This document shows positions 4,218-62,470 of a stretch of 63,412 bases of DNA, piece by piece. The DNA comes from Octopus bimaculoides. Its lineage: Eukaryota. The notes under the pieces were generated by a model. The model made no database searches. It saw nothing but the letters and a program-made list of their open reading frames with translations, and was not told the DNA's origin. The first letter of the stretch is position 1; every line of letters starts with the position of its first letter. Position numbers and translations under genes: made by a program. The stretch spans positions 2,954,591 through 3,018,002 of the forward strand of contig NC_068995.1 in assembly GCF_001194135.2 (NCBI RefSeq), given 5' to 3'.

Positions 4218-5312
4218 ATCATCATCATCGCTTAACGTCCACTTTCCATGCTAGCATGCGTTGGATGATTTGACTGAGGGCTGGCGAACCAGATGGCTCC
4301 AATCTGATCTGGCAGAGTTTCTACAACTAGATGCCCTTCCTAACGCCAGCCACTCCGAGAGTGTAGTGGGCGCTTTTACGTGCCACTGGCACAAGGGCCA
4401 GTCTGGCGGTACTGGCAATGGCCACGCTCAAATGGTGTTTTTTACGTGCCACCTGCTCAGGAGTCAGTCCAGCGGCATTGGCAACAACCTTGGTTGAATG
4501 TTTTGTTCATGTGCCAGTAAGGCGATGCTGGTAACGATCACGCTCGAATAGTTCTTATTACATGGCATGGAAGGAAGACAGCTGCTCTGGCAGTGATCCT
4601 GCTCGGATGGTGCTGTTAGCGCTCCACTGGCACGGATGCCAGTCATCAAATTTGGTTCAATTTCGATTTTCAGTTGCCCCAAGCAGAGTTTAGTGTCCAA
4701 TGAAGGAAGGTTGGCATGGGTGCCAGTTGTCAAATTTGGTTCGATTTCGATTTCACTTGCCTCAACAGGTCTTCGCAGGCAGAGTTTTGTGTCCAAAGAA
4801 GGAGAAGTATGCATAAGTGGGCTGGCTACACCCCTGGTAAAGGCCACAGGTTATGGTCTCACTTGTCTTGCCAGGTCTTCTCATGCACAGCATATTTCCA
4901 AAGGTCTCGGTTACTAGTCTTTGCCTCGGTGAGGCCTAATGTTCGAAGGTCGTGCTTCACCACCTCGTCCCAGATCTTCCTGGGTCTACCTCTTCCACAG
5001 GTTCCCTCAACCGCTAGGGTGTGGCACTTTTTCACACAGCTATTCTCATCCATTCTCGCCACATCACCATACCAGCGCAGTCGTCTCTCTTGCACACCAC
5101 ATCTAATGCTTCTTATGTCCAACTTTTCTCTCAAGGTACTTACACTCTGTCGAGTATGCACACTGACATTACACAACCATCGGAGCATACTGGCTTCATT
5201 CCTTGCAAGCTTATGCATGTCCTCAGCAGTCACGGCCCATGTTTCACTGCCATGTAGCATGGCTGTTCGTACATATGTGTCATACAGTCTGCCTTTTACT
5301 CTGAGTGAGAGG
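4218..5312 (-). mobile_element. RTE-clade LINE 3' fragment with 3' UTR and (GAT)n tail
   Basis: ORF 4859-5260 MLHGSETW...RNEASMLRWLCNVS...ERRLRWYGDVARMDENS...GRGRPRKIW is the typical RTE ORF2 C-terminus, followed by the family A tail. Confidence 0.9.
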
Positions 5313-40209: not shown

Positions 40210-43015
40210 TCATCATCAACATTATCATCATCATCGTTTAATGTCCGTTTTCCATGCTGGCATGGGTTGAACGGTTTGACTGGGGCCTGGCAAGCCAGGA
40301 GGCCACACCAGGTTCCAATCTGATCTGGCAGTGTTTCTACAACTGGATGCCCTTCCTCATGCCAACAACTCAGAGTCTAGTGGGTGCTTTTTACATGCCA
40401 CAGGCACAGGAGCCAGACGGGGTGAGGGGGCTGGCATTGACCACGTTCAGATGGTGCTTTTTATGTGCCACCGGCATGGGAGCCCGTCAAGCTGGCATCA
40501 GCCACATTTGGATGGTGCTTTTTACGTACCACCAGCACAGGAGCCAGTCAGAGTGAGGGAGCTGACATCGACCACATTCAGATGGTGCTTTTTACATGCC
40601 ACTAGCATGGGAGCCAGTCAAGTGGCACTGGTATCAGCCACAACTACAATTTCCATTTGATTGTGGTTTGATTTGGTTTTGATTTTGATGTACTTGACTC
40701 AATAAGTCTCCTCAAGCACGGCATGTCACTATGATCCAAAGGTACTTTAAATGGGCTGGTTATGTGACACTGGTGTAGGCTACAGCTGTGATCTCACTTT
40801 ACTTGTCGGTCTTTCTCAGTCACAGCATACCTCCAGCGGTTTCGGTCTTTTGTCATTGCCTCTGTGAGGCCCAACATTTGAAGGTCATGCTTCACCACCT
40901 CATTCCACGTTTTCCTGGGTCTCTCTCTACCACGGGTTCCTTTCACTGTTAGGTAATGACACTTCCTCACACAGCTCTCCTCGTCCATCTGCAGTACATG
41001 ACCATCCCAATGCAAACGTCTCTCTTGCACACCACATCCGATGCTTCTTATGTCCAACATTTCTCTCAGGGCACTTACACTCTGTTGTGTGTGCACACTG
41101 ACATTACACATCCAGCTGATCATGCTGCGTCATTTCTTTTGAGCCTACACATGTCTTCAGTAGTCATGGCCCATGTTTCACTGCTGTGAAGCATGGCAGT
41201 TCGCACACATGCATTGTACAATCTACCTTTCACTCTGAGCAAGAGGCCCTTTGTCACCAGTAGAGGTAGGAGCTTTCTGAACTTTGCTCAGATTATTCTT
41301 ATTCTAGTAGTAACGCTCTCTGAGCATTCCCCCCCCCCCCTACAGACTTGGTCACCTAGGTAGCGGAAGCTATCGACTACTTCTAGTTTCTCCCCTGGCA
41401 TGTGATGGAATCAGTTTTCTGAGCATCTGTGGTGTCTATTGACCCTGTGCATCTGCTGCACACGAAAGCTATCTTCCTAGTTAACCTTCCTTTGATGTTG
41501 CTGCACCTCTTATGTGTCCATAGCTTACACTAGATACATCTTATAGAGTTTCTACCTACACCTTTTCTACATATCGAGCAGGGTCATCTACCTGAAGGGG
41601 GTTTGTGATGTGTTTGCCTTTCTACATACTAGGACTTTGGTTTTTGTGACATTGGACTCTAAGGCTCTTTGATTCTAAACCTTGCTTTCACACCTGAAAT
41701 TTCTTCTCTAATTCTGGTTGTGATTCTGCTATGAGAGACAGGTCATCAACATAGAGGAGCTCCCAGGGGCAACTTGTCTTGAATTCCTCTGTTATTGCCT
41801 GGAGGACTATGATGAATAAGAGGGGTCTGAGTGCTGATCCTTGGTGGACTCCAACTTCTACCTGGAATTCTTCACTATACTCATTGCCAACCCTAATCTT
41901 ACAAATGGCATCTCTGTACAGAGCCTGCACAGCCCTGATTAACCATTCATCAATCCCTAGTTTCTGCATCACCCACCAGATAAGGGATCGGGGGGGGGGG
42001 GGGGGACCCTGTCAAAAGCTTTCTCCAAGTCCAAAAAAGCCAAGTATAGGGGTTTATCTTTGGCTAGGGAGTTCTCCTGCAGTTGCTGTACCAGGAATAT
42101 AGCATCAATGGTGCTTCTACCTGGCACAAAACTGAACTGCATCTCATGTAAGCAGACTTTCTCCCCAATTAGTTGGGCTATGACCCTCTCCGTGACCTTC
42201 ATCACCTGATTCAGCAGTTTGATATCCCTGTAGTTATTTCTATCTAAAGAATCACCTTTAGCCTTGTAGCAGTTGACTATAGTACTGCTACGCCAGTCAT
42301 TGGGTATGACTCCATCATGAACTACTTGGTTCACAATACAGGTAACCAGGCCATAACCCACACCACCAGATATTTTAAGCATCTCAGCAGTGATTCCTGA
42401 TGGGCCGGGGGCTTTTCCTGACTTCATACCCTTAATTGCTTTATCTACCAGGGGTGCTGTCTATTCAGATAGCTGGTCCCTCTACTGGGTCAACATTTGG
42501 CAGGTTCTCCTCCTCCTATTCATTCTCCACGTTCAGCAGTCTTTCATAATGGCTTCTCCAAGCCTCTTTCTTTTCAGAATCATTAAAGGCAAATGCACCA
42601 TCATCCATGCGGACACATTTCTCTCCTGTGACATCACAATTTTCTCTCACACACTGTCTTGCAATCCGAAATACTTCAGTTCTCTGGTCCTCACATCGCT
42701 GAACATTGGCAAACTTCTTTTCTGCTTCCCCCTTGGCTATGTATACCTGTCGCCCAGCTTCTCTTCTGGCTATCTGGTACAGTTCCCTGCTACCCCCACT
42801 TTGTTCTAATGACTTTGTCTACTGTATTATTCCACCACCACGCTACTCTAGGCCTGGAAGGGACTTTGCACCATCTGCAGATTTGGTCTGTGGCACTCAG
42901 TAAGGGGTCCTGTAGGAAATTCCAGCTACTCTCTATGTCTGAAGTCTGTAACTCCTCCTCCCTCTCATCAAATTTCTTGATGAGGACGTTCCTAAATCTC
43001 TCCCCCGCGCTCTCT
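40210..43015 (-). mobile_element. Longest RTE LINE copy in the window (RT domain, frameshifted) with 3' tail
   Basis: MKSGKAPGPSGI..NYRDIKLL..MQFSFVPGRSTIDAIF..AFLDLEKAFDRVP, GVHQGSAL.PLLF, ELLYVDDL; frameshifts near homopolymer runs. Confidence 0.95.
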
Positions 43016-43270
43016 GTCTATATATATATATTTTGTGCGAATGGTTTTGTTATACGGCACCGTATTTTACAATCCTGTAAATAATTAAACTGGTATTTAT
43101 ATATAAGCTTGAAACTTATGGTGATCACCATGCAATGACTAAGGAAAATAGTCTAATAAAGGGGCATATAAGCCCTTGACAGAAAAAAGAAGGCTTTCCT
43201 ATCTCTGTAGGAGCCAAACCCACATCCCTTTGTTAACATGACTGTGTTATCTTTGTGTATTTTAATATAC

Positions 43271-43318
<48 letters not shown>

Positions 43319-43400
43319 TATATATATGTATATAAATATATGTATATATATGTGTGTGTGTATATATATGTATATATGTGTGCGTATATATATATATATA

Positions 43401-43500
43401 NNNNNNNNNNNNNNNNNNNNNNNNNNNNNNNNNNNNNNNNNNNNNNNNNNNNNNNNNNNNNNNNNNNNNNNNNNNNNNNNNNNNNNNNNNNNNNNNNNNN
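43401..43500. other. Assembly gap of exactly 100 N (usually means unknown size)
   Basis: Run of 100 N. Confidence 0.95.
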
Positions 43501-43548
43501 GGACGTGAAACGATGATGATGATGATGATGATGATATATATATATATA

Positions 43549-44086
43549 TAGGGTGATTGAAAAGTAACTCCCTATTTTAAAATACTTATTAATTATTTAT
43601 TAACTGTAATTTTTACAAAAAATGGATATGAGAGGAAAGCTTTTAGTACAAGGTTTTATTTAAAATTTGATATGGGCTCCAAGTGTCGCCACCAGCTTCT
43701 TGAGTCGCCCAGGAATTGCAGTAACTGATTTCACCAGAAACTCCTGTAGGATGGAAGAAGACATAACTTCTCGTATTTGCCCTTCAAGTTCATTCAAAGT
43801 CTTAGGTTTGGAACAGTAGACTTGTTCCTTTAACCAACCCCCAAAGGAAGAAGTCACAGGATGTTAAGTTGGGACTTCTGGCAGGCCACTCAGACAACAA
43901 TGACCCATCCATCTCTTGGGAAAGTGGGCAGTCAGTCATTTGTGAATGACATGAGCAATACAATTAAAGGATAAATTTTTGTACTTCAAAAAACAAACAC
44001 AAAAAAAATTGAGAAAAAAAATTACAATTAATAAATAATTTATAAGTATTTTAAAATAGGGAGTTACTTACTTTTCCATCACCCTG
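43549..44086 (-). mobile_element. Tc1/mariner non-autonomous element with a transposase C-terminal remnant
   Basis: About 55-bp TIRs (t/c)agggtgat(t/g)gaaaagtaactccctattttaaaatactta, TA flanks; GWLKEQVYCSKPKTLNELE..IPGRLKKLV..GAHIKF. Confidence 0.85.
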
Positions 44087-44124
44087 TATATATGTATATA
44101 TAAGTTTGTGTGTGTATATATATA

Positions 44125-44985
44125 TATAAACCTTGTGTATAATACACACCCCTTCTCTAACTTGAGTCAAGGAGGTCTATATAACGTCCTTGGTTTGTAA
44201 ACATATATACGCTAACGTCCTTTATTATTATTGTATATATAACAATGCAAACGTGTAGCTTTTTTGTGCACTTTGTTTGCAGAAAATAAAGAAATAACAG
44301 TAATAACGTCAGTGAAAAATAAACATTAAGTAAATTGCCTTTACATATTTATCACTATCAGTTACAAAAGCAAAAACATTTCTTCAAATCCTTCAAATTC
44401 CACGTCACTTTCAGCATCAAATAACTGTTCCATTTGTTCCTCCCCAAACATGTCAGCATCATTGTAGTGTCTCCGTCATCGTCAGATTCATAGTCAACAT
44501 CAGAAGATTCACTTCCATTTATTTCATCTTTCCATACAACGTCATCCTGAGTACGATCCAGAGCAAACGATAAAACATTTCACAATAATCTGGGGATCAA
44601 GTTCATTCCATGCATACACGATCCATTTGCATTATCAAAGTCAGGTCGGGAGCGCGAACCCTTCCACCTTTAGTGAACCTTTTTTCAAGTCGACCTCCAT
44701 TAAGTCCCTAAATGCCGCAATTTGTTTTTAATCGTTTTGTTAATAGAGACATCTAATGGCTGCAATATGGAGGTCAGACCTGCTGCAATGACAGCAACAT
44801 CTGCTTTGAGACGTTTTTTTTTTGTAAATGCTTCAGTTTATCTAAACATTGCCGGACAGCAAATAGAGACTCGGCATTGCTTAGAAAATATTTTCCATTT
44901 TTAACCTCGTATATAGTACGCACTAGGGATTCTGACCATTAGATTTTTGGGAAAAAATGCGGATTACACTCGAGGATTTACGGTA
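44125..44985 (-). mobile_element. Internally deleted pogo/Tigger-like DNA transposon
   Basis: TIR TACCGTAAATCCTCGAGTGTAATCCGCA at 44958-44985 and a degenerate partner near 44125; DDE remnant VIAAGLTSILQPLDVSINK and ALDRTQDDVVW. Confidence 0.8.
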
Positions 44986-44996
44986 TAATACATATA

Positions 44997-45120
44997 CAGG
45001 GTGTCCACAAAGACTGCGTACATGGAGTAAATAAAATCATAACATAAACAATTAACTATAAGAAATAATTTCTTAAAGTATGTCTTAATCCCCATGTACC
45101 CAGACTTTGTGGACACCCAG
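44997..45120. mobile_element. 124-bp Tc1-type MITE
   Basis: TA-CAGGGTGTCCACAAAG ... CTTTGTGGACACCCAG-TA. Confidence 0.85.
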
Positions 45121-45332
45121 TATATGTGTGTCTGTGCATGTATATATGTATGTATATATTTATGTTTGTCTGTCTATCTATCTATATACACACACACACG
45201 TATGTATGTATATTTGTTGACACATTTTCCTGCTTTCTAATAATTTATCCAATATTTCTGCTGTTCTAACGGCAATTCTGCGTTCAAAAACATATAATCT
45301 TATCTGTATCGTACAATATATATATAATAATA

Positions 45333-45695
45333 ATAATATTAGGGACAAAATCCAAAATTACAGGTAAAAACTCAATTAAAATCAATTTATAAAAAATTAA
45401 AATTAAATTGAGCTTTACAGAGTAAAATATATATAAATATATAGTTTTAGGGAAAAAGAACCAAGGTTCATGAACTCATCGATGAAAATCCGCTGTCACA
45501 TAGAAAAATTAATAATTAAAATAATTATATATATATATATATAGTTTTAGGGAAAAGAACGAAGGTTCATGAACTCATCTTTTCCCTAATACTATATATT
45601 TATATATATTTTATACTGTGAAGCTTAATTTAATTTTAATAAATTGATTTTAATTGAGTTTTAACCTGTAATTTTGGATTTTATCCCTAATATTA
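45333..45695. repeat. AT-rich palindrome (about 120-bp arms) with a duplicated central unit
   Basis: taatattagggacaaaatccaaaattacagg... mirrored at 45578-45695; tatagttttagggaaaa..gaac.aaggttcatgaactcatc occurs twice in the spacer. Confidence 0.85.
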
Positions 45696-45876
45696 TATAT
45701 ATATATATATATATGTATTTATGCATGTGTATATATATGTATCTACGTATAGTTTATATTTTATAAATTCTAGATATGATATATAATATTTTTTTAATAG
45801 TTTTACTTAATTTCCCAATTCTCTCTTTCCTGAAAACATTGTTAAAATTAAATTTTACAATTTTAAGTTGTTATAG

Positions 45877-46029
45877 AAATTCAACTTCAATTTTCCTCCC
45901 AAAATGGAAGAAAGCAGACGACATTCTCTTCGTCATCAAAGACAGCAATGGCAGGATAACGACAAAGACATTTTCCTATGAGGAAAACCCTGAAATTACA
46001 AATATTTCTTCAAAGGATTTTTATAATTG
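45877..46029 (+). CDS. Plexin-like exon: end of one IPT domain and start of the next
   Basis: ttatag | (R)[31 protein letters not shown] | gtaagt, phase 2-2. Confidence 0.8.
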
Positions 46030-49000
46030 GTAAGTCTTGGGGGTTTAGAACTTTTAAAGAGCTTTCTGTTATTTTTTCTCTTTGATATTTTACTTGCTTC
46101 AGTCATTAGACTACGGCCATACTGGGGCACTGTCTTGAAGAATTTTAGTCTGCTACTTAACCTATCGGTCTCTCTTGCCGAAAAAAAAAGGCACAAACAC
46201 ACACAGAAAGGATGGAATTCTTTCAGATACCATTCCCAAGGCTTTGGTTCGCCTGGGGCTATAGTAGCAGACACTTTCCCCCAGATGCCACACAGCGGGT
46301 CCGGAATTATCGTGGCAAATAAATTTTGTGCCTGGGGCGGCCCTTCAGTTTGCCACCCCTAGACCCCACAAAAAACACATATTGCCTACAGAAGACTCAA
46401 AAGTACGGCCCCTACCACCAGCGTGTGTTAGATATGTCTGTCCTATAACTTAGGAACTTGTTCTTGATTCTGTTGGGAAAGCAGTTTAATTAATTATGTA
46501 TTAACAAATCTACTTGCAGGTCTAATTACACTGGAAATTGCACAACCGATAATGAGACCCGTGTCTGTAATGACAGGTAAGGAAACTGTTACTTTTTTTC
46601 TTTAGTTTTTTTTTTTATGACTTTGTCTGAGGAAGAAGGAACATGCCCCACAACCATCTACCAGGATCACTGATACCAGTGGAACGAAGAGAAAAACTTG
46701 TAGGGGGAACAGAAACTGGACAGAAGTGGACAAAAGCAGAGCAAGTGAGAAGAGAGGTCAGATAAGAGTGGATAAAATTTTGAGCAAATTGGGCTTACCT
46801 TCCTGTTACGTGTTTTTTATTATATTGAACCAAACTTCCAGATGCTGCCATTAAAGCCATTCTTGAAAGGAAGATATTTCTGGTGCAAAAGTCATTATTA
46901 CCTACAAGTGTAGGGTTTTGTTTTACAGCAAATGAAATGAAGGAATATTGAAGCCTTAACGAAGTTTTACATCTTAGGCTTACATGATTTATCATTGTGC
47001 TTATTTTCCGAAAGTTATTTTAAGCAGATATATCTTGTAACGGAGTGAATGATGAACAAATCTGTTGACCTTATCAAGTAACGGCTGATAGGAACGGATT
47101 CCCATCAAATAATGACCATCTATGCAGGTAATATCATCTGTAGAAGAAGAGATGTCTCAATGAATGTTGCTTATCAATGTTCGAGTTCTGTTGTAGCACA
47201 GGGAATCTCATGGCAGAGACTCCTTCCCACACTTTCCAGGAGACACCCATTTGCGGTCTTCTGCTTCTACTTCGTTCTTGTAACAATGTCTAACAAGGGA
47301 GATAACTCCCTATCTGTAAAACCCGTACTGCAGCATCTCAGAATATCTCTTGAGCTAGGCTATAATCTATTATGAACTTTGATGTAGTGGTGTTAAGTGT
47401 CTTGCACAAGAATTCAATAAAATTCATCAATTACACCGAACTGATAACATCATGTATTCATTATTTCAACTCGAACAGGATAAAGTGATATTTCAACTGA
47501 GAGCGTAATGTCAGAACTGTCGTCTGGTAATTTGTTCAACGTGCAAATATTCTACCAGCTCGCTGCCTTATTGCGGTCCTATTAACAACAATATTACTTT
47601 CTATTATATTTCAGTGGTAAACCCTTGATTTTTCAAGGCAATTATTTCAACAACGTGAAATTCGTATCAGTAACACCCAATGGGGTAAGACATTCCTCTT
47701 TATTGTTGCTTTCTTTTCTTTTTTCCTGCTCAGTGAGTAACAACTTGGTAACTGTATGGAAGCATAGCAGTGCTGAGAACATTGTTCAGAGATTTTAGAT
47801 GGAGATGTCAAAGTAGAGTGTGTAAAACTTGTCGAATTCTCGAAACTGTTGGGGTCAAAATGGTTGATAGTCAGAAATACAGTCTCATACTTCAAATCAA
47901 TTACATATCCAGAATAAAGTAGGCAGTTCGAACACAATTCAAATTTAAACAATATAGGTTGATATCAGGGGTGTATTTTCCAGGTGTGTTAGGTATGTGC
48001 TGCTCACCCATCGAAAATGACAAATTTATTGTAAATATTAATTTTACTCATTAATTTAATCACAAATCTGAATGGAAAACTTTTGTTATACTCCAGCTTG
48101 ACATTAGGTGACATAGTTAAGTTTATTTAATCATGTTGTTTTGAATTAATCATGGATTATCTCATAGCTTTGAGATTTCGATGATATGATTGTGTATTTT
48201 TTGTATGACATTGTTGGGTGAGTGTGAGAGGCAGGAGCTGATTTGTTTGAACATAAAGCGGGTAGAATATTTGGGCCATATACAGGTAGAGAGAGAGAGG
48301 AAGGAGAAAGCGGGGGAGAGAGAGAGATGATGTTATTGTTGCCATTATCATTGTTGTTACAGTTTTTGCTATAGTAGTAGTAGTAGTAGTTGTTGTTGTT
48401 TGTGTCATCTGAATGTAATGTTTCATTAAGCGGGCCCTGGCTTGGGTTAATATCCCCTCAGTTTTGGAGCCGGCAGGATTATCTAGAAGTGATGGGAAGA
48501 GACCAGATGGTCTTAGCCTTCGTCTCTGGGTAAGAGGTATGTGCCTTATCTGAGACACCATAGTCTGTGACTCCTTTGATCCCTTCCACATCCTGGAAGG
48601 GTCACTGCTTCTGTTGCCGAAAGGAATAAAATTCTCAAGTATCGAAACGTGGCTGTGAACCACTTCTTCCAGCGTGTAGCGTTTGAGACGTTTGGAGTGA
48701 CTTGGTTGCAAATGGCAAAGATTCCGTCATTATTGATGGATTGCTTTACCATGGCAACAATAGGTAACACCTGTGAGGGTGCTTGGCTGTACCAACGCAA
48801 CACCTTAGCATTGCCGTCGCTCATGGTAATGCAGCAACTGTGCTGGCTTGCTTTAGTAGACTCAATTGAACCTTGTGGTGTGTGACCATTTGAGGTGTTT
48901 GATATTTTTCTTTCTTTTTCATTCTTCCTATTTTCCCACTTTTGCTTTTCTTTTTTCCTTTGCTCCTGTTTGTGCTTTTTTGGGGGGGTTTTGTTTTGTA

Positions 49001-60370: not shown

Positions 60371-62470
60371 CATACACGTATGCATATACACATGCATGCA
60401 TACACACATAAACATATGCGCATATTATGTGCACAGTCATGCAGCTACATCCGTCATCCATCCATCCAATCATATATACATACATTACATACATACATAT
60501 ATACGTACGTACATACATACACACAGTCATACACATATGCATATACACACATGCATGCATACACATATACATATGCGAATATGCATACAGTCATGCAGCT
60601 ACATCTTTCCTCCCTCCCTCCATACATCCATCCATCCATACATACATTACATACATACATTCATATATACATACAACTTGAATGGTTGCCTGATAGTACA
60701 CGGCACACTATACATGTACATCTGACTATTGTATTATCAGAAGCATGAAACTTATAGTAGTTCGCATTTAAATTTTGTGTGTATTAAATATATATCTTAG
60801 TCATATAACAAGAATAACAATAAAATCCAGCCCAAAAATAGTCACCAGTTTTTACCAGAATATTTTCAAAGCATTTATTGTGTCTGTACTGAATCTCTTT
60901 GACAGACGTCACTCTTGGAGCCAGTGTTAATATTGTATCAAAGAAAGTCAACAAGTCTTATCACTTGGTAAGTTTACTACTGAAATATATTTGACATGTG
61001 GTGATTGCTTCATCTTCTCGGATGATTGTTGCCTCCTTGTGCTTCTTCGTTGTGAATAGCATTTCTGACTTTCTGTCCATGACTTCTCAGATGACTAAGT
61101 AATCCCATTGCAAATCTGCAAAATTTGAAGCATCAGTGACAGACCAAAGTTATATCTTACTCGTAAACTTGGTGTTACGGGATTCTGTATAAACCAATCA
61201 TTTCTCCCCAGAACTAGTTCCATCCTTGCACGTGTTATCCACTCAAACATTAATAATAATAAGTTTACAAGGACCAACCGATCCTTTTTATGCTTTTATG
61301 TTCTCCTACCTGGGCAGCAATATCTGGAAGGGCTATGGACCAAAGCCTTTACCTTTTGTTTTTGAACTATTGAAAAAGAAAACCTCTTGACGAAATGGCG
61401 ATTTTGTTAAGAAATTAGCTTCACAAACTCATGGTTCTGTGTTCAGTCTCACTGAACATTACCTTGGGCAAGTTCTATTATAACAGAAAAAGAAATTATT
61501 TAGAGTTTGAAGCTGATAAAGCAAGATTTTACATTGTTCATAACTTTCCCAAATGTATTCGTTCAGTAAATAAAGCTTTCTTAACTGGGAATCAAACCTG
61601 AGCGAAGAAAGGAATGGAAATGAAAAAAATAAGGTTTTCGTACTTTTTTCCCAAGAGCATTCATTGAGATATTTAAGGGAAACCAGATTGTAGACCCTGA
61701 TCTTTAAGAACTTATCAGAACATTCCTTATATAAGAAACTATTATAACATTCCACATCTGGAAACTGGAAGCTTATCCTTTCATTCACACCTTCATTCCT
61801 TTAACATCTCAATTATTAATATAACAATTATTTATTTTAAAGGTTGCCGGAGATAAACGGAAAGCTCTATCGGTAAGTGTTGAATTATGTTGTTTTTGAT
61901 GATTTAATGAGAGCAGGGGGAGTAGCAGCCATGACTTGTTTTTTTTTACAGGGATTTTGAGATTAATGCAAAGAAGGAAGTTATTCACAGTTTAGACATC
62001 TGGTGCCAATGTCAATGTGTCCCTCTGGCATATCCCAGCTCTTATATCAAAGAAACTTGTATCCCCTCACATGGTTTTGGTTGGCCTGAGGCTATAGCAG
62101 AAGACACTTGCTCAAGGTGCCATGCAGTGGGACTGAACCCAGAACTATATGGTTGAGAAGCAACCTTCTTGCCACACACCTATTATAACAATTATTTCAA
62201 GATGATTTTTTTTTTCTTGTAAACTCAAATTTTGCTTTCTAAGAATTTCTGGAAATTCCTTAAACTTTGGTAATTTGTTTTGCTTCTTCAGATGACCGAC
62301 ATTAGCCACATGAAGCTTCCCGCAGAACTGGAAGCTCTTCTGCTGAATTTGTTTTCCAAAATGCTGGACCAAGCAAACACTGCCCCACCTCTAAGATATC
62401 TTCACAATTTCTTTATTCATCAAGCATCAAAGTTTTTACTGAACGATGGAAGCCAATGGACAATAAACAG
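45877..62470 (+). CDS. Highly divergent plexin-family receptor, partial (IPT domains, TM, GAP1, RBD, start of GAP2); 16 exons, open at both ends
   Basis: All GT-AG junctions are phase-compatible with no stop over 1929 nt; collinear motifs [86 protein letters not shown] correspond to plexin F.Y.EDP, GGT.LTI.G, IPFLDY, NK.FLL.FI, RRTESVAE, EPLF..GPIDAITG, VKVLNCDTITQVKEK, WHLV, IKYMFDFL..WKSN. Confidence 0.9.
46520..46576 (+). CDS. Plexin-like 57-nt symmetric exon (possible cassette)
   Basis: ttgcag | (W)[18 protein letters not shown](S) | gtaagg, phase 2-2, frame-preserving. Confidence 0.6.
47615..47684 (+). CDS. Plexin-like exon (IPT strand, G.PL...G.N)
   Basis: tttcag | (S/C)[23 protein letters not shown] | gtaaga, phase 2-0. 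Confidence 0.8.
48425..48869 (+). mobile_element. CRE-like non-LTR retrotransposon relic (REL endonuclease C-terminus)
   Basis: [70 protein letters not shown]; frameshifts and stops. Confidence 0.8.
49095..49277 (+). CDS. Plexin-like exon (IPT)
   Basis: ccccag | [35 protein letters not shown] | gtaagt, phase 0-0. Confidence 0.8.
49325..49860 (+). mobile_element. Family E repeat (rearranged) with an (AAT)n tail
   Basis: Homology to 16693-17212 with internal duplications. Confidence 0.75.
49889..50035 (+). CDS. Plexin-like exon (last IPT domain)
   Basis: ctgcag | [31 protein letters not shown] | gtaaga, phase 0-0. Confidence 0.85.
50147..50712. repeat. Intronic 38-bp minisatellite, about 15 units
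   Basis: Consensus aggcayrccctctgttatrataacccarccctttcttt. Confidence 0.9.
50897..51110 (+). CDS. Plexin-like transmembrane exon
   Basis: ccacag | [52 protein letters not shown] | gtaatg, phase 0-1. Confidence 0.9.
51236..51560 (-). mobile_element. R4/Dong 3' end, short copy
   Basis: Homologous to 51721-52050; abuts (ATT)n. Confidence 0.75.
51721..52604 (-). mobile_element. R4/Dong-clade 3' fragment with REL endonuclease
   Basis: [29 protein letters not shown]-like and [33 protein letters not shown]; (ATT)n on both sides. Confidence 0.85.
53202..53323 (+). CDS. Plexin-like exon (juxtamembrane / start of GAP)
   Basis: tttcag | (G)[29 protein letters not shown] | gtaagt, phase 1-0. Confidence 0.85.
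53471..53810 (+). mobile_element. SINE family D
   Basis: Homologous to 17618-17965. Confidence 0.8.
53826..54205 (+). mobile_element. SINE family B
   Basis: tRNA-like head plus body. Confidence 0.8.
54275..54396 (+). CDS. Plexin-like exon (GAP1)
   Basis: tggcag | [40 protein letters not shown](K) | gtaagt, phase 0-2. Confidence 0.88.
54617..54852 (-). mobile_element. Family E repeat, 3' part
   Basis: Reverse complement of 16980-17212; AAT flanks. Confidence 0.75.
56121..56192 (+). CDS. Plexin-like exon leading into the arginine motif (5' boundary uncertain)
   Basis: tttcttgtag | [23 protein letters not shown](R) | gtaata, phase 2-2; other in-frame acceptors exist at 55968, 55974 and 56025. 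Confidence 0.75.
56372..56438 (+). CDS. Plexin-like exon (after the arginine finger)
   Basis: ggtttag | (R)[22 protein letters not shown] | gtaaga, phase 2-0; compare RTESVAEKMLTNW. Confidence 0.9.
56439..56681. repeat. Minisatellite of about 8 units with palindromic core TAAGAT-AA-ATCTTA, beginning at the splice donor
   Basis: (g)taagataaatctta repeated every 22-36 nt. Confidence 0.85.
57120..57266 (+). CDS. Plexin-like exon (end of GAP1)
   Basis: ttttcag | [39 protein letters not shown] | gtaagt, phase 0-0. Confidence 0.92.
57800..58104. mobile_element. hAT-like MITE
   Basis: t(t)gtggttctcaac ... ggttgagagccactg terminal inverted repeats. Confidence 0.65.
58583..58730 (+). CDS. Plexin-like exon (Rho-binding domain, N-terminal half)
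   Basis: cgacag | [36 protein letters not shown] | gtaaat, phase 0-1. Confidence 0.9.
59085..59500 (+). mobile_element. Two SINE family C copies
   Basis: Family C sequence twice. Confidence 0.7.
59523..59880 (+). mobile_element. SINE family B
   Basis: Family B sequence. Confidence 0.8.
60119..60274 (+). CDS. Plexin-like exon (RBD, C-terminal half)
   Basis: gtgcag | (V)[28 protein letters not shown] | gtaagt, phase 1-1; compare LNTL.HY.V.DG. Confidence 0.88.
60906..60967 (+). CDS. Plexin-like exon
   Basis: tgacag | (Y)[20 protein letters not shown] | gtaagt, phase 1-0; YHL(V) corresponds to WHLV. Confidence 0.82.
61843..61872 (+). CDS. Plexin-like 30-nt exon
   Basis: attttaaag | [10 protein letters not shown] | gtaagt, phase 0-0. 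Confidence 0.75.
62292..62470 (+). CDS. Plexin-like exon (start of GAP2)
   Basis: ttcttcag | [39 protein letters not shown](S) | gtaacc, phase 0-2. Confidence 0.88.

Follow-up and report, generated by a model that had tools for sequence, protein, structure and literature searches.

A fast-evolving octopod offshoot of the plexin family with replaced catalytic residues and no detectable Sema domain

We analyzed a 63,412-nucleotide stretch of the Octopus bimaculoides genome (contig NC_068995.1, positions 2,954,591 to 3,018,002, forward strand; hereafter the window) and in it the interval 45877-62470, where a reading of the sequence alone (the original prediction) had placed an extremely divergent but intact plexin paralogue. 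The interval holds the central two-thirds of an intact, single-copy protein-coding gene. This gene is a real, fast-evolving cephalopod offshoot of the plexin family, and the evidence rules against a pseudogene. It is already annotated by NCBI as plexin-B2(-like), and hence is not unannotated: the automatic model is XP_052829393.1, 'plexin-B2 [Octopus bimaculoides]', of 837 residues, and the UniProt entry A0A0L8FVW3 falls into the same cluster.

On the forward strand, the interval contains 17 GT-AG exons that add up to 1989 nucleotides, or 662 codons without a stop, and all 16 junctions are phase-compatible. Both ends are exact exon boundaries, with position 45877 directly following ttatag and position 62470 directly preceding gtaacc. 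The acceptors are all AG preceded by a pyrimidine tract, and the donors read GTAAGT, GTAAGG, GTAATG, GTAATA, GTAAAT or GTAACC. With a stop expected in 6.8% of codons from the base composition of the interval, 662 open codons would arise by chance with P ~4e-21. We obtained the exon coordinates by mapping the annotated proteins onto their own genomic loci (exact-match splice mapping), which reproduced each protein exactly; the exons in the window are 100% identical, exon by exon, to the annotated O. bimaculoides proteins P0001 and P0004. The original prediction, of about 640 residues over 15 junctions, was right about the open frame, the compatible phases and the true end boundaries, and too low in its counts. 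As it had counted 16 exons, one exon was probably missed, perhaps that of 30 nucleotides at 61843-61872. The parts of the gene that the window covers are the following (GAP, GTPase-activating protein; RBD, Rho-GTPase-binding domain; pLDDT, predicted local distance difference test score of AlphaFold2):

29628..29664, forward strand: coding part of exon 1 (MTKFYNSQWNFI plus G; also MTKFYNSQWNFIG), ATG at 29628, donor gtaagt at 29665, upstream of the interval
43401..43500, no strand: assembly gap of 100 N, replacing about 20 kb with coding exons 2-9
45877..46029, forward strand: exon, start of an IPT-like domain, ...SSKDFYN(W), entered in phase 2; splice sites, 100% identity to P0001 and P0004
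46520..46576, forward strand: exon between (W) and (S); splice sites and orthologue mapping
47615..47684, forward strand: exon beginning with (S); splice sites and orthologue mapping
49095..49277, forward strand: exon ending ...KLLEIS; splice sites and orthologue mapping
49889..50035, forward strand: exon, core of the membrane-proximal IPT/TIG domain; Pfam TIG 22.3 bits, pLDDT 80-93, matches IPT3-6 of Plexin-A1
50897..51110, forward strand: exon, transmembrane helix at about 50951-51028, then KCLKKQKK; read from the sequence, helix modelled at O. sinensis residues 509-549
53202..53323, forward strand: exon, juxtamembrane part and start of the GAP fold, DVPFQKM where canonical plexins have GIPFLDY
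54275..54396, forward strand: exon in the best-conserved segment, 93-95% identity between O. sinensis and Argonauta
55310..55369, forward strand: exon of 60 nucleotides beginning with (N), kept in Argonauta and missing from the annotated O. vulgaris model
56121..56192, forward strand: exon ending in CG, with Ser in place of the first Arg of an Arg-Arg pair
56372..56438, forward strand: exon beginning with (R), the kept second Arg of the pair being split over the junction (CG, then G)
57120..57266, forward strand: exon; splice sites and orthologue mapping
58583..58730, forward strand: exon, first half of the ubiquitin-like RBD; Pfam Plexin_RBD 30.7 bits, cut-off 27
60119..60274, forward strand: exon, second half of the RBD, with the VNTY change
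60906..60967, forward strand: exon beginning with (Y), linker that keeps a trace of the WHLV motif
61843..61872, forward strand: micro-exon of 30 nucleotides, found in all four species
62292..62470, forward strand: exon with TDISHMKL and ...SQWTIN, in which the second GAP half begins, ending in phase 2

Upstream of the interval, the gene is interrupted by the assembly gap. Exon 1 is 92% identical to residues 1-13 of the O. sinensis protein (P0002) by tblastn, and its length and phase match those of O. sinensis exon 1. The gap flanks align to the O. sinensis locus at ~38.2 kb and ~58.6 kb, bracketing the exons at 41421-57955. Exons 2-9, which encode the signal peptide and about 270 residues of the N-terminal ectodomain, are found intact elsewhere in this assembly, on an unplaced contig of 10.8 kb (LGKD02139664.1; P0189, eight exons, with agreeing translation), where the annotation treats them as a gene of their own, LOC106867078. 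Thus, one O. bimaculoides gene has been annotated as two, and the short 837-residue model is an assembly artefact, because exons 2-9 sit on the unplaced contig with the gap in between. At the other end, the last exon of the interval ends in phase 2, so the gene must run on; four C-terminal exons follow past the end of the window, at the window-equivalent positions 65803-72192. The full protein has about 1086-1092 residues, like those of O. sinensis and Argonauta, and both the reading frame and the structure of about 30 exons are intact in O. bimaculoides, O. sinensis, O. vulgaris and Argonauta hians.

Part of the analysis was done with an initial, hand-built model of 14 exons and 645 residues, on which all Pfam and phmmer scores given below for the window part were computed. 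This model lacked the exons 46520-46576, 55310-55369 and 61843-61872, and the orthologue proteins brought the number to 17. A homologue search with it returned three clusters (O. bimaculoides; O. sinensis and O. vulgaris; Argonauta hians), the 'plexin-B2-like' proteins of O. sinensis and A. hians being 76% and 44% identical to it. A Pfam scan of unspliced reading frames, in which stops had been replaced by X, yielded no more than a weak TIG match, since small exons escape such a scan. The introns are rich in repeats around intact exons, as had been predicted: 3882 of the 16594 bases of the interval (~23%) have further copies inside the window, all of them outside the exons.

A separate observation concerns the 96 nucleotides at 56025-56120. 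They were considered as the beginning of an exon (DKFSMNLN...ISCR) and dropped, as the orthologue proteins place that exon at 56121-56192. The stretch is open in the frame of this exon and ~96% identical to O. sinensis, with one mismatch in its last 90 nucleotides, in a locus where most aligned introns are 86-91% identical. The stretch could serve as an alternative 3' splice site or help to control splicing.

The encoded protein is a type I membrane receptor of about 1090 residues, comprising a signal peptide, an N-terminus of ~270 residues that belongs to no recognisable family, about three beta-sandwiches of the IPT-like kind and a single transmembrane helix, which is a 26-residue hydrophobic stretch followed by KCLKKQKK. 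Its intracellular region is of the complete plexin type, that is, a RasGAP fold split by a ubiquitin-like RBD. Plexin_cytopl, a Pfam profile with a cut-off of 25 bits, scored 68.2 bits on the window part; on the full-length proteins of O. bimaculoides, O. sinensis and Argonauta it reached 98.8, 95.1 and 91.5 bits, respectively, covering positions 3-420 of 441 in both Octopus proteins and 37-418 in Argonauta. Plexin_RBD matched at the expected position with 30.7 bits in the window part and 30.0 and 31.0 bits in the Octopus proteins (cut-off 27); the Argonauta protein, at 25.1, fell just under. Membership in the plexin family, as originally proposed, thus holds at the gathering thresholds of both profiles. 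With the TIG cut-off at 20.9 bits, the matches to this profile (22.3, 20.6 and 16.4 bits) were borderline. Against the Protein Data Bank (PDB), phmmer scored the window part at 47-64 bits with Plexin-B2, C1, A3, A1, B1 and D1, the highest being Plexin-B2 (5e6p). O. sinensis residues 561-1078 align end to end with this structure; the best PDB sequence match was again Plexin-B2 (103 bits), followed by D1 (88 bits) and the B1, C1, A1 and A3 intracellular chains (63-74 bits).

The N-terminus showed no likeness to canonical plexin ectodomains. Pfam found no Sema or PSI domain at E<=1 in the O. sinensis (P0002) or Argonauta (P0003) proteins, and an N-terminal alignment that included the O. bimaculoides piece P0189 had no similarity to canonical ectodomains (hhalign probability 1%). 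In the canonical plexin of Lingula, the same tool found Sema, PSI, TIG_plexin and TIG_2.

We then considered the predicted structure. AlphaFold2 with a 65-sequence alignment gave a mean pLDDT of 72.6 (only 32.8 with a 3-sequence alignment). Most of the intracellular region reached 80-97, and the beta-rich RBD insert was modelled at O. sinensis residues 753-843. In the ectodomain, about three beta-sandwiches were modelled at residues 240-500 with pLDDT ~80-93, and Foldseek matched them to IPT3-6 of Plexin-A1 (E=6e-9). The intracellular model matched Plexin-B1, B2, A3, D1, A1 and C1 with template modelling (TM) scores of 0.66-0.85 (target-normalised) at 17-20% sequence identity. The highest values, 0.83-0.85, were those with the intracellular structures of Plexin-B1 and B2, and the model was built from an alignment that consists mostly of canonical plexins.

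To quantify selection, we compared O. bimaculoides with O. sinensis by the Nei-Gojobori method, where dN and dS are nonsynonymous and synonymous divergence and p refers to a test of dN/dS against 1:

Intracellular region, 556 codons: dN 0.034, dS 0.152, dN/dS 0.22, p=5e-12
Intracellular region, window part only, 415 codons: dN 0.039, dS 0.173, dN/dS 0.225, p=4e-10
N-terminal region, 264 codons: dN 0.107, dS 0.187, dN/dS 0.57, p=0.03
IPT ectodomain, 219 codons: dN 0.171, dS 0.187, dN/dS 0.91, p=0.69

The intracellular region is clearly under purifying selection, with 43.5 nonsynonymous differences over 1323 sites and 47.5 synonymous differences over 345 sites. Purifying selection had been predicted for the gene as a whole; it is concentrated in the cytoplasmic part, whose ratio is far from 1, and is not seen in the IPT ectodomain. 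The identity of the aligned intron blocks between these species, mostly 86-91%, is consistent with the dS values. In the comparison with Argonauta, in which dS is saturated, dN was 0.25 for the intracellular, 0.64 for the IPT and 0.88 for the N-terminal part. The constraint on the intracellular region is clear, though probably weaker than would be expected of a canonical plexin. Apart from these rates, A. hians differs from the Octopus species, which lack it, in a mucin-like insert of about 40 residues that is rich in Thr and Pro and lies between two IPT-like domains (locus 15614-15922).

The sequence itself has diverged strongly. The three altered cytoplasmic motifs first noted are all present (DVPFQKM, the VNTY change and TDISHMKL, in the exons at 53202-53323, 60119-60274 and 62292-62470), and the low identity judged by eye is borne out: over 581 aligned columns, none of 97 representative non-cephalopod plexins is more than 23% identical to the intracellular domain. 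The median was 19.7% for the O. sinensis protein, compared with 44% for the canonical Lingula protein. The same holds for the Plexin_cytopl scores:

Octopods: 91-99 bits
P0009, a relative from the Logan collection: 94 bits
Mollusc proteins without Sema domain (Ylistrum, Dreissena, Mya, Patella): 284-344 bits
Canonical Lingula plexin: 615 bits

When set beside canonical plexins of classes A-D (mouse Plexin-B2, 5e6p; Lingula anatina plexin-A4, XP_013416174.1), the octopus protein shares the single membrane pass, the membrane-proximal IPT domains and the intracellular order of juxtamembrane segment, first GAP half, RBD insert and second GAP half. It differs in being ~1090 rather than ~1600-1900 residues long, in the undetected Sema and PSI domains, in an intracellular identity of 17-23%, in a much shorter stretch between the WHLV and EIYLTRLL motifs, and in the residues described next.

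In the PlexinC1-Rap1B structure, Arg711 is the arginine finger and Arg1001 stabilises the finger and touches Switch II (PMC3787391). Asn1005 and Asn1009 of zebrafish PlexinC1 are critical for the non-canonical Rap catalysis, and their mutation 'dramatically' alters the GAP assay (PMC3787391). We located the columns of Arg1001, Asn1005 and Asn1009 through the R-x3-N-x3-N spacing of the canonical LRFWVNxxKN motif. They read Q, Q and H in the octopods and Q, Q and E in P0009; among the 97 other representatives, they are Arg in 94, Asn in 74 and Asn in 75, respectively. At the Arg-Arg pair, the octopods have S,R and P0009 has W,S, compared with Arg in 92 and 89 of the 97.

An exhaustive profile search with the octopod proteins P0001-P0003 against 1.84 billion representatives returned only 258 proteins at E<=1e-3. 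After the octopods, the ranking continued with P0009 (348 bits) and P0010, an N-terminal O. bimaculoides fragment; the rest scored at most 149 bits. A second profile search, for homologous proteins, contributed nothing beyond this N-terminal O. bimaculoides fragment. P0009 is an uninterrupted open reading frame (ORF) of 970 residues on a 3243-nucleotide Logan contig (SRR29271459), in a cluster of eight sequences of 960-976 residues. The contig represents a processed mRNA, and so shows transcription of a relative of the gene in another organism. It resembles the octopod proteins in the two Gln substitutions, a PNILLDI motif, the signal peptide, the IPT-like domains, the transmembrane helix and the plexin intracellular region, and differs from them in its intracellular identity of 31%, the loss of both pair arginines and a shorter N-terminal region.

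In a neighbour-joining tree of 101 sequences over the 581 intracellular columns, the octopods and P0009 formed a clade with 100% bootstrap support. This clade was nested in a mollusc-only group of 17 taxa of plexin-like genes lacking Sema (chiton, Solemya, Mya, Dreissena, Mytilus, scallop, Haliotis, Patella and one Logan sequence), outside which fell a canonical-length Mytilus plexin-B-like protein (P0020, 1896 residues). From the group ancestor, the cephalopod lineage reaches a depth of 1.84-1.96 and the other members 0.55-0.87, a branch 2.3-3 times longer. Together with the 44% overall identity to Argonauta, this agrees with the proposed fast evolution. Likewise in line with the original prediction, the gene is probably not an ordinary orthologue of classes A-D: Sema and PSI are undetected, the score is 91-99 instead of 615 bits, and it clusters with the mollusc-only genes rather than on a branch of typical length beside an ordinary orthologue. 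The immediate sister is poorly supported (at most 35%, the best being the chiton sequence) and the distances are saturated (~2.2-2.4), so we regard the placement as a lead, not a result; long-branch attraction may lie behind the grouping. A shared S-Y/F-x-I-[R/Q] in the octopods and the mollusc relatives, where canonical plexins have S-L-P-L-R, agrees with it.

These nearest neighbours in the tree include Mya arenaria XP_052781261.1, Dreissena KAH3876459.1, Ylistrum XP_060084856.1, Patella KAK6176902.1 and a Mytilus 'plexin-A2-like' protein. Like the octopod protein, they have an ectodomain with TIG domains only and no Sema match, and both Switch-II Asn are lost. Unlike it, they mostly keep all three Arg (exceptions include Patella, with K-R, and the transcript P0027, with R-W and also the Arg-to-Gln change), score higher with Plexin_cytopl and have shorter branches. 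Bivalves, gastropods and the chiton have several such plexin-like proteins of ~800-1500 residues (P0013, P0015, P0016, P0018, P0029, P0036, P0083 and others); those scanned show TIG domains without a Sema match, ~290-340 bits with Plexin_cytopl and loss of both Asn. They have been named automatically as plexin-A2-, A4- or B-like, and look like an undescribed mollusc expansion.

Two defining features of a canonical semaphorin-receptor plexin were tested for and not found in the octopod gene, which is therefore not one. We hypothesize that it encodes a non-catalytic (pseudo-GAP), plexin-derived receptor with a non-semaphorin ligand, a reading to which we assign a probability of roughly 60%. All octopods carry substitutions at Arg1001, Asn1005, Asn1009 and one Arg of the pair, yet the intracellular region remains under purifying selection. 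It would therefore most likely no longer be a RapGAP, and would instead bind small GTPases or other plexins as a module without catalytic activity. Because no propeller is detectable and the ectodomain evolves much faster than the intracellular part, the ectodomain would probably recognise something other than a semaphorin. The GAP-related domain of IQGAP offers a functional analogy only: there, a RasGAP fold without its catalytic residues is kept as a small-GTPase binding module. IQGAP is a cytosolic scaffold and not a receptor, and common descent is limited to the RasGAP fold. More tentatively, and with less than even odds, the octopod gene may define a cephalopod class of plexin-derived receptors without semaphorin binding or RapGAP catalysis. 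Such a pseudo-enzyme would sequester small GTPases or modulate canonical plexins, its fold having been selected since before the Octopus/Argonauta split, while a fast-changing ectodomain would serve a new, lineage-specific ligand.

Several points weigh against this hypothesis. The loss of GAP activity is deduced from residues, and one Arg of the pair is kept in all octopods. Either member of the pair may be the finger Arg711: index arithmetic on chain 4m8n points to the first, and the p120GAP pattern to the second. The dN/dS of 0.91 in the IPT ectodomain would fit plain relaxed constraint as well as a changing ligand. The N-terminus may contain a much-reduced head domain, given that the AlphaFold2 model has pLDDT <50 over most of residues 1-235, and the fold match is partly inherited, because canonical plexins dominate the alignment used for modelling. 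Finally, the octopus gene's own transcript was not found in the searched collections, including Logan; NCBI models the gene with three isoforms in O. sinensis, which is indirect support for expression.

The most serious alternative is that the protein is still an active RapGAP-type plexin, signaling after ligand-induced dimerisation, with the substitutions compensated by the kept Arg and other residues. The conserved second Arg and the retention under selection of the entire GAP fold and RBD would suit such an enzyme. Moreover, the mollusc relatives already lack both Asn and yet have the three Arg, so these Asn are evidently dispensable for keeping the gene in that group. We nevertheless consider it unlikely, as the column of Arg1001, almost invariant elsewhere, is Gln here, both Asn are replaced too, and P0009 has gone further by losing both arginines of the pair. 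The functional importance of Arg1001, Asn1005 and Asn1009 (PMC3787391) argues in the same direction. Far less probable is an ordinary octopus plexin-B orthologue that looks odd only through poor gene models. This would explain the NCBI name and the slight preference for Plexin-B2 over D1 among PDB sequences; however, the exon-level coding sequence reproduces the proteins exactly in four genomes, so the divergence is no modelling artefact. The low Plexin_cytopl score and median identity, the undetected Sema and PSI domains, and the position of the Mytilus plexin-B-like protein outside the 17-taxon clade also contradict it. We give the least credence to a decaying or functionless copy, be it a young pseudogene or a product of neutral drift, whose open frame would be a leftover. 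An IPT ectodomain indistinguishable from neutrality, the missing transcript and the fragmentary O. bimaculoides annotation could be read in this way. The fragmentation, however, stems from the 100-N gap, the missing exons being intact on the unplaced contig, and a decaying copy is hard to reconcile with 662 open codons, a frame of about 30 exons intact in four species including Argonauta, a cytoplasmic dN/dS of 0.22, and segments 93-95% identical between Octopus and Argonauta.

A survey of plexin evolution found that, from choanoflagellates to humans, no part of plexins is better conserved than the RasGAP domain, and reported only two plexins in the sole mollusc examined, Aplysia californica (PMC6374515). 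The octopod gene breaks this pattern: it has no detectable Sema domain and replaced Arg and Asn residues, and its intracellular fold is still selected across Octopus and Argonauta. A canonical plxna has been reported separately in O. bimaculoides, in a paper on the visual system (PMC9815951). In the literature searched, we found no description of plexins that lack Sema or are GAP-dead. If truly non-catalytic, the octopod protein would be a natural 'pseudo-GAP' plexin and a means to part the scaffolding from the catalytic roles of the intracellular region; if the proposed reading is true, it also points to a wider mollusc expansion of plexin-like receptors without Sema.

The surroundings of the gene in the window yielded a few further features. 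On the forward strand, an ORF of 337 residues (1344-2357) encodes the C-terminal half of a BTB/POZ domain (Pfam 21.2 bits). It shares 53% identity (E=7e-31) with the final exon of a BTB+DUF3504 gene located upstream of the orthologue in Argonauta. The presence of this BTB gene upstream in both loci supports orthology with conserved gene order. On the reverse strand, the first intron of the plexin-like gene contains a reverse-transcriptase fragment (41972-42427, RVT_1 43 bits), and the ORF at 4859-5260 resembles a remnant of a long interspersed nuclear element, without a Pfam match; both appear to be retroelement debris. The DNA of the window is AT-rich, with many microsatellites, and contains seven runs of N, at 12688-13054, 15360-15904, 20416-20425, 25529-25592, 32865-33486, 34560-34819 and 43401-43500.

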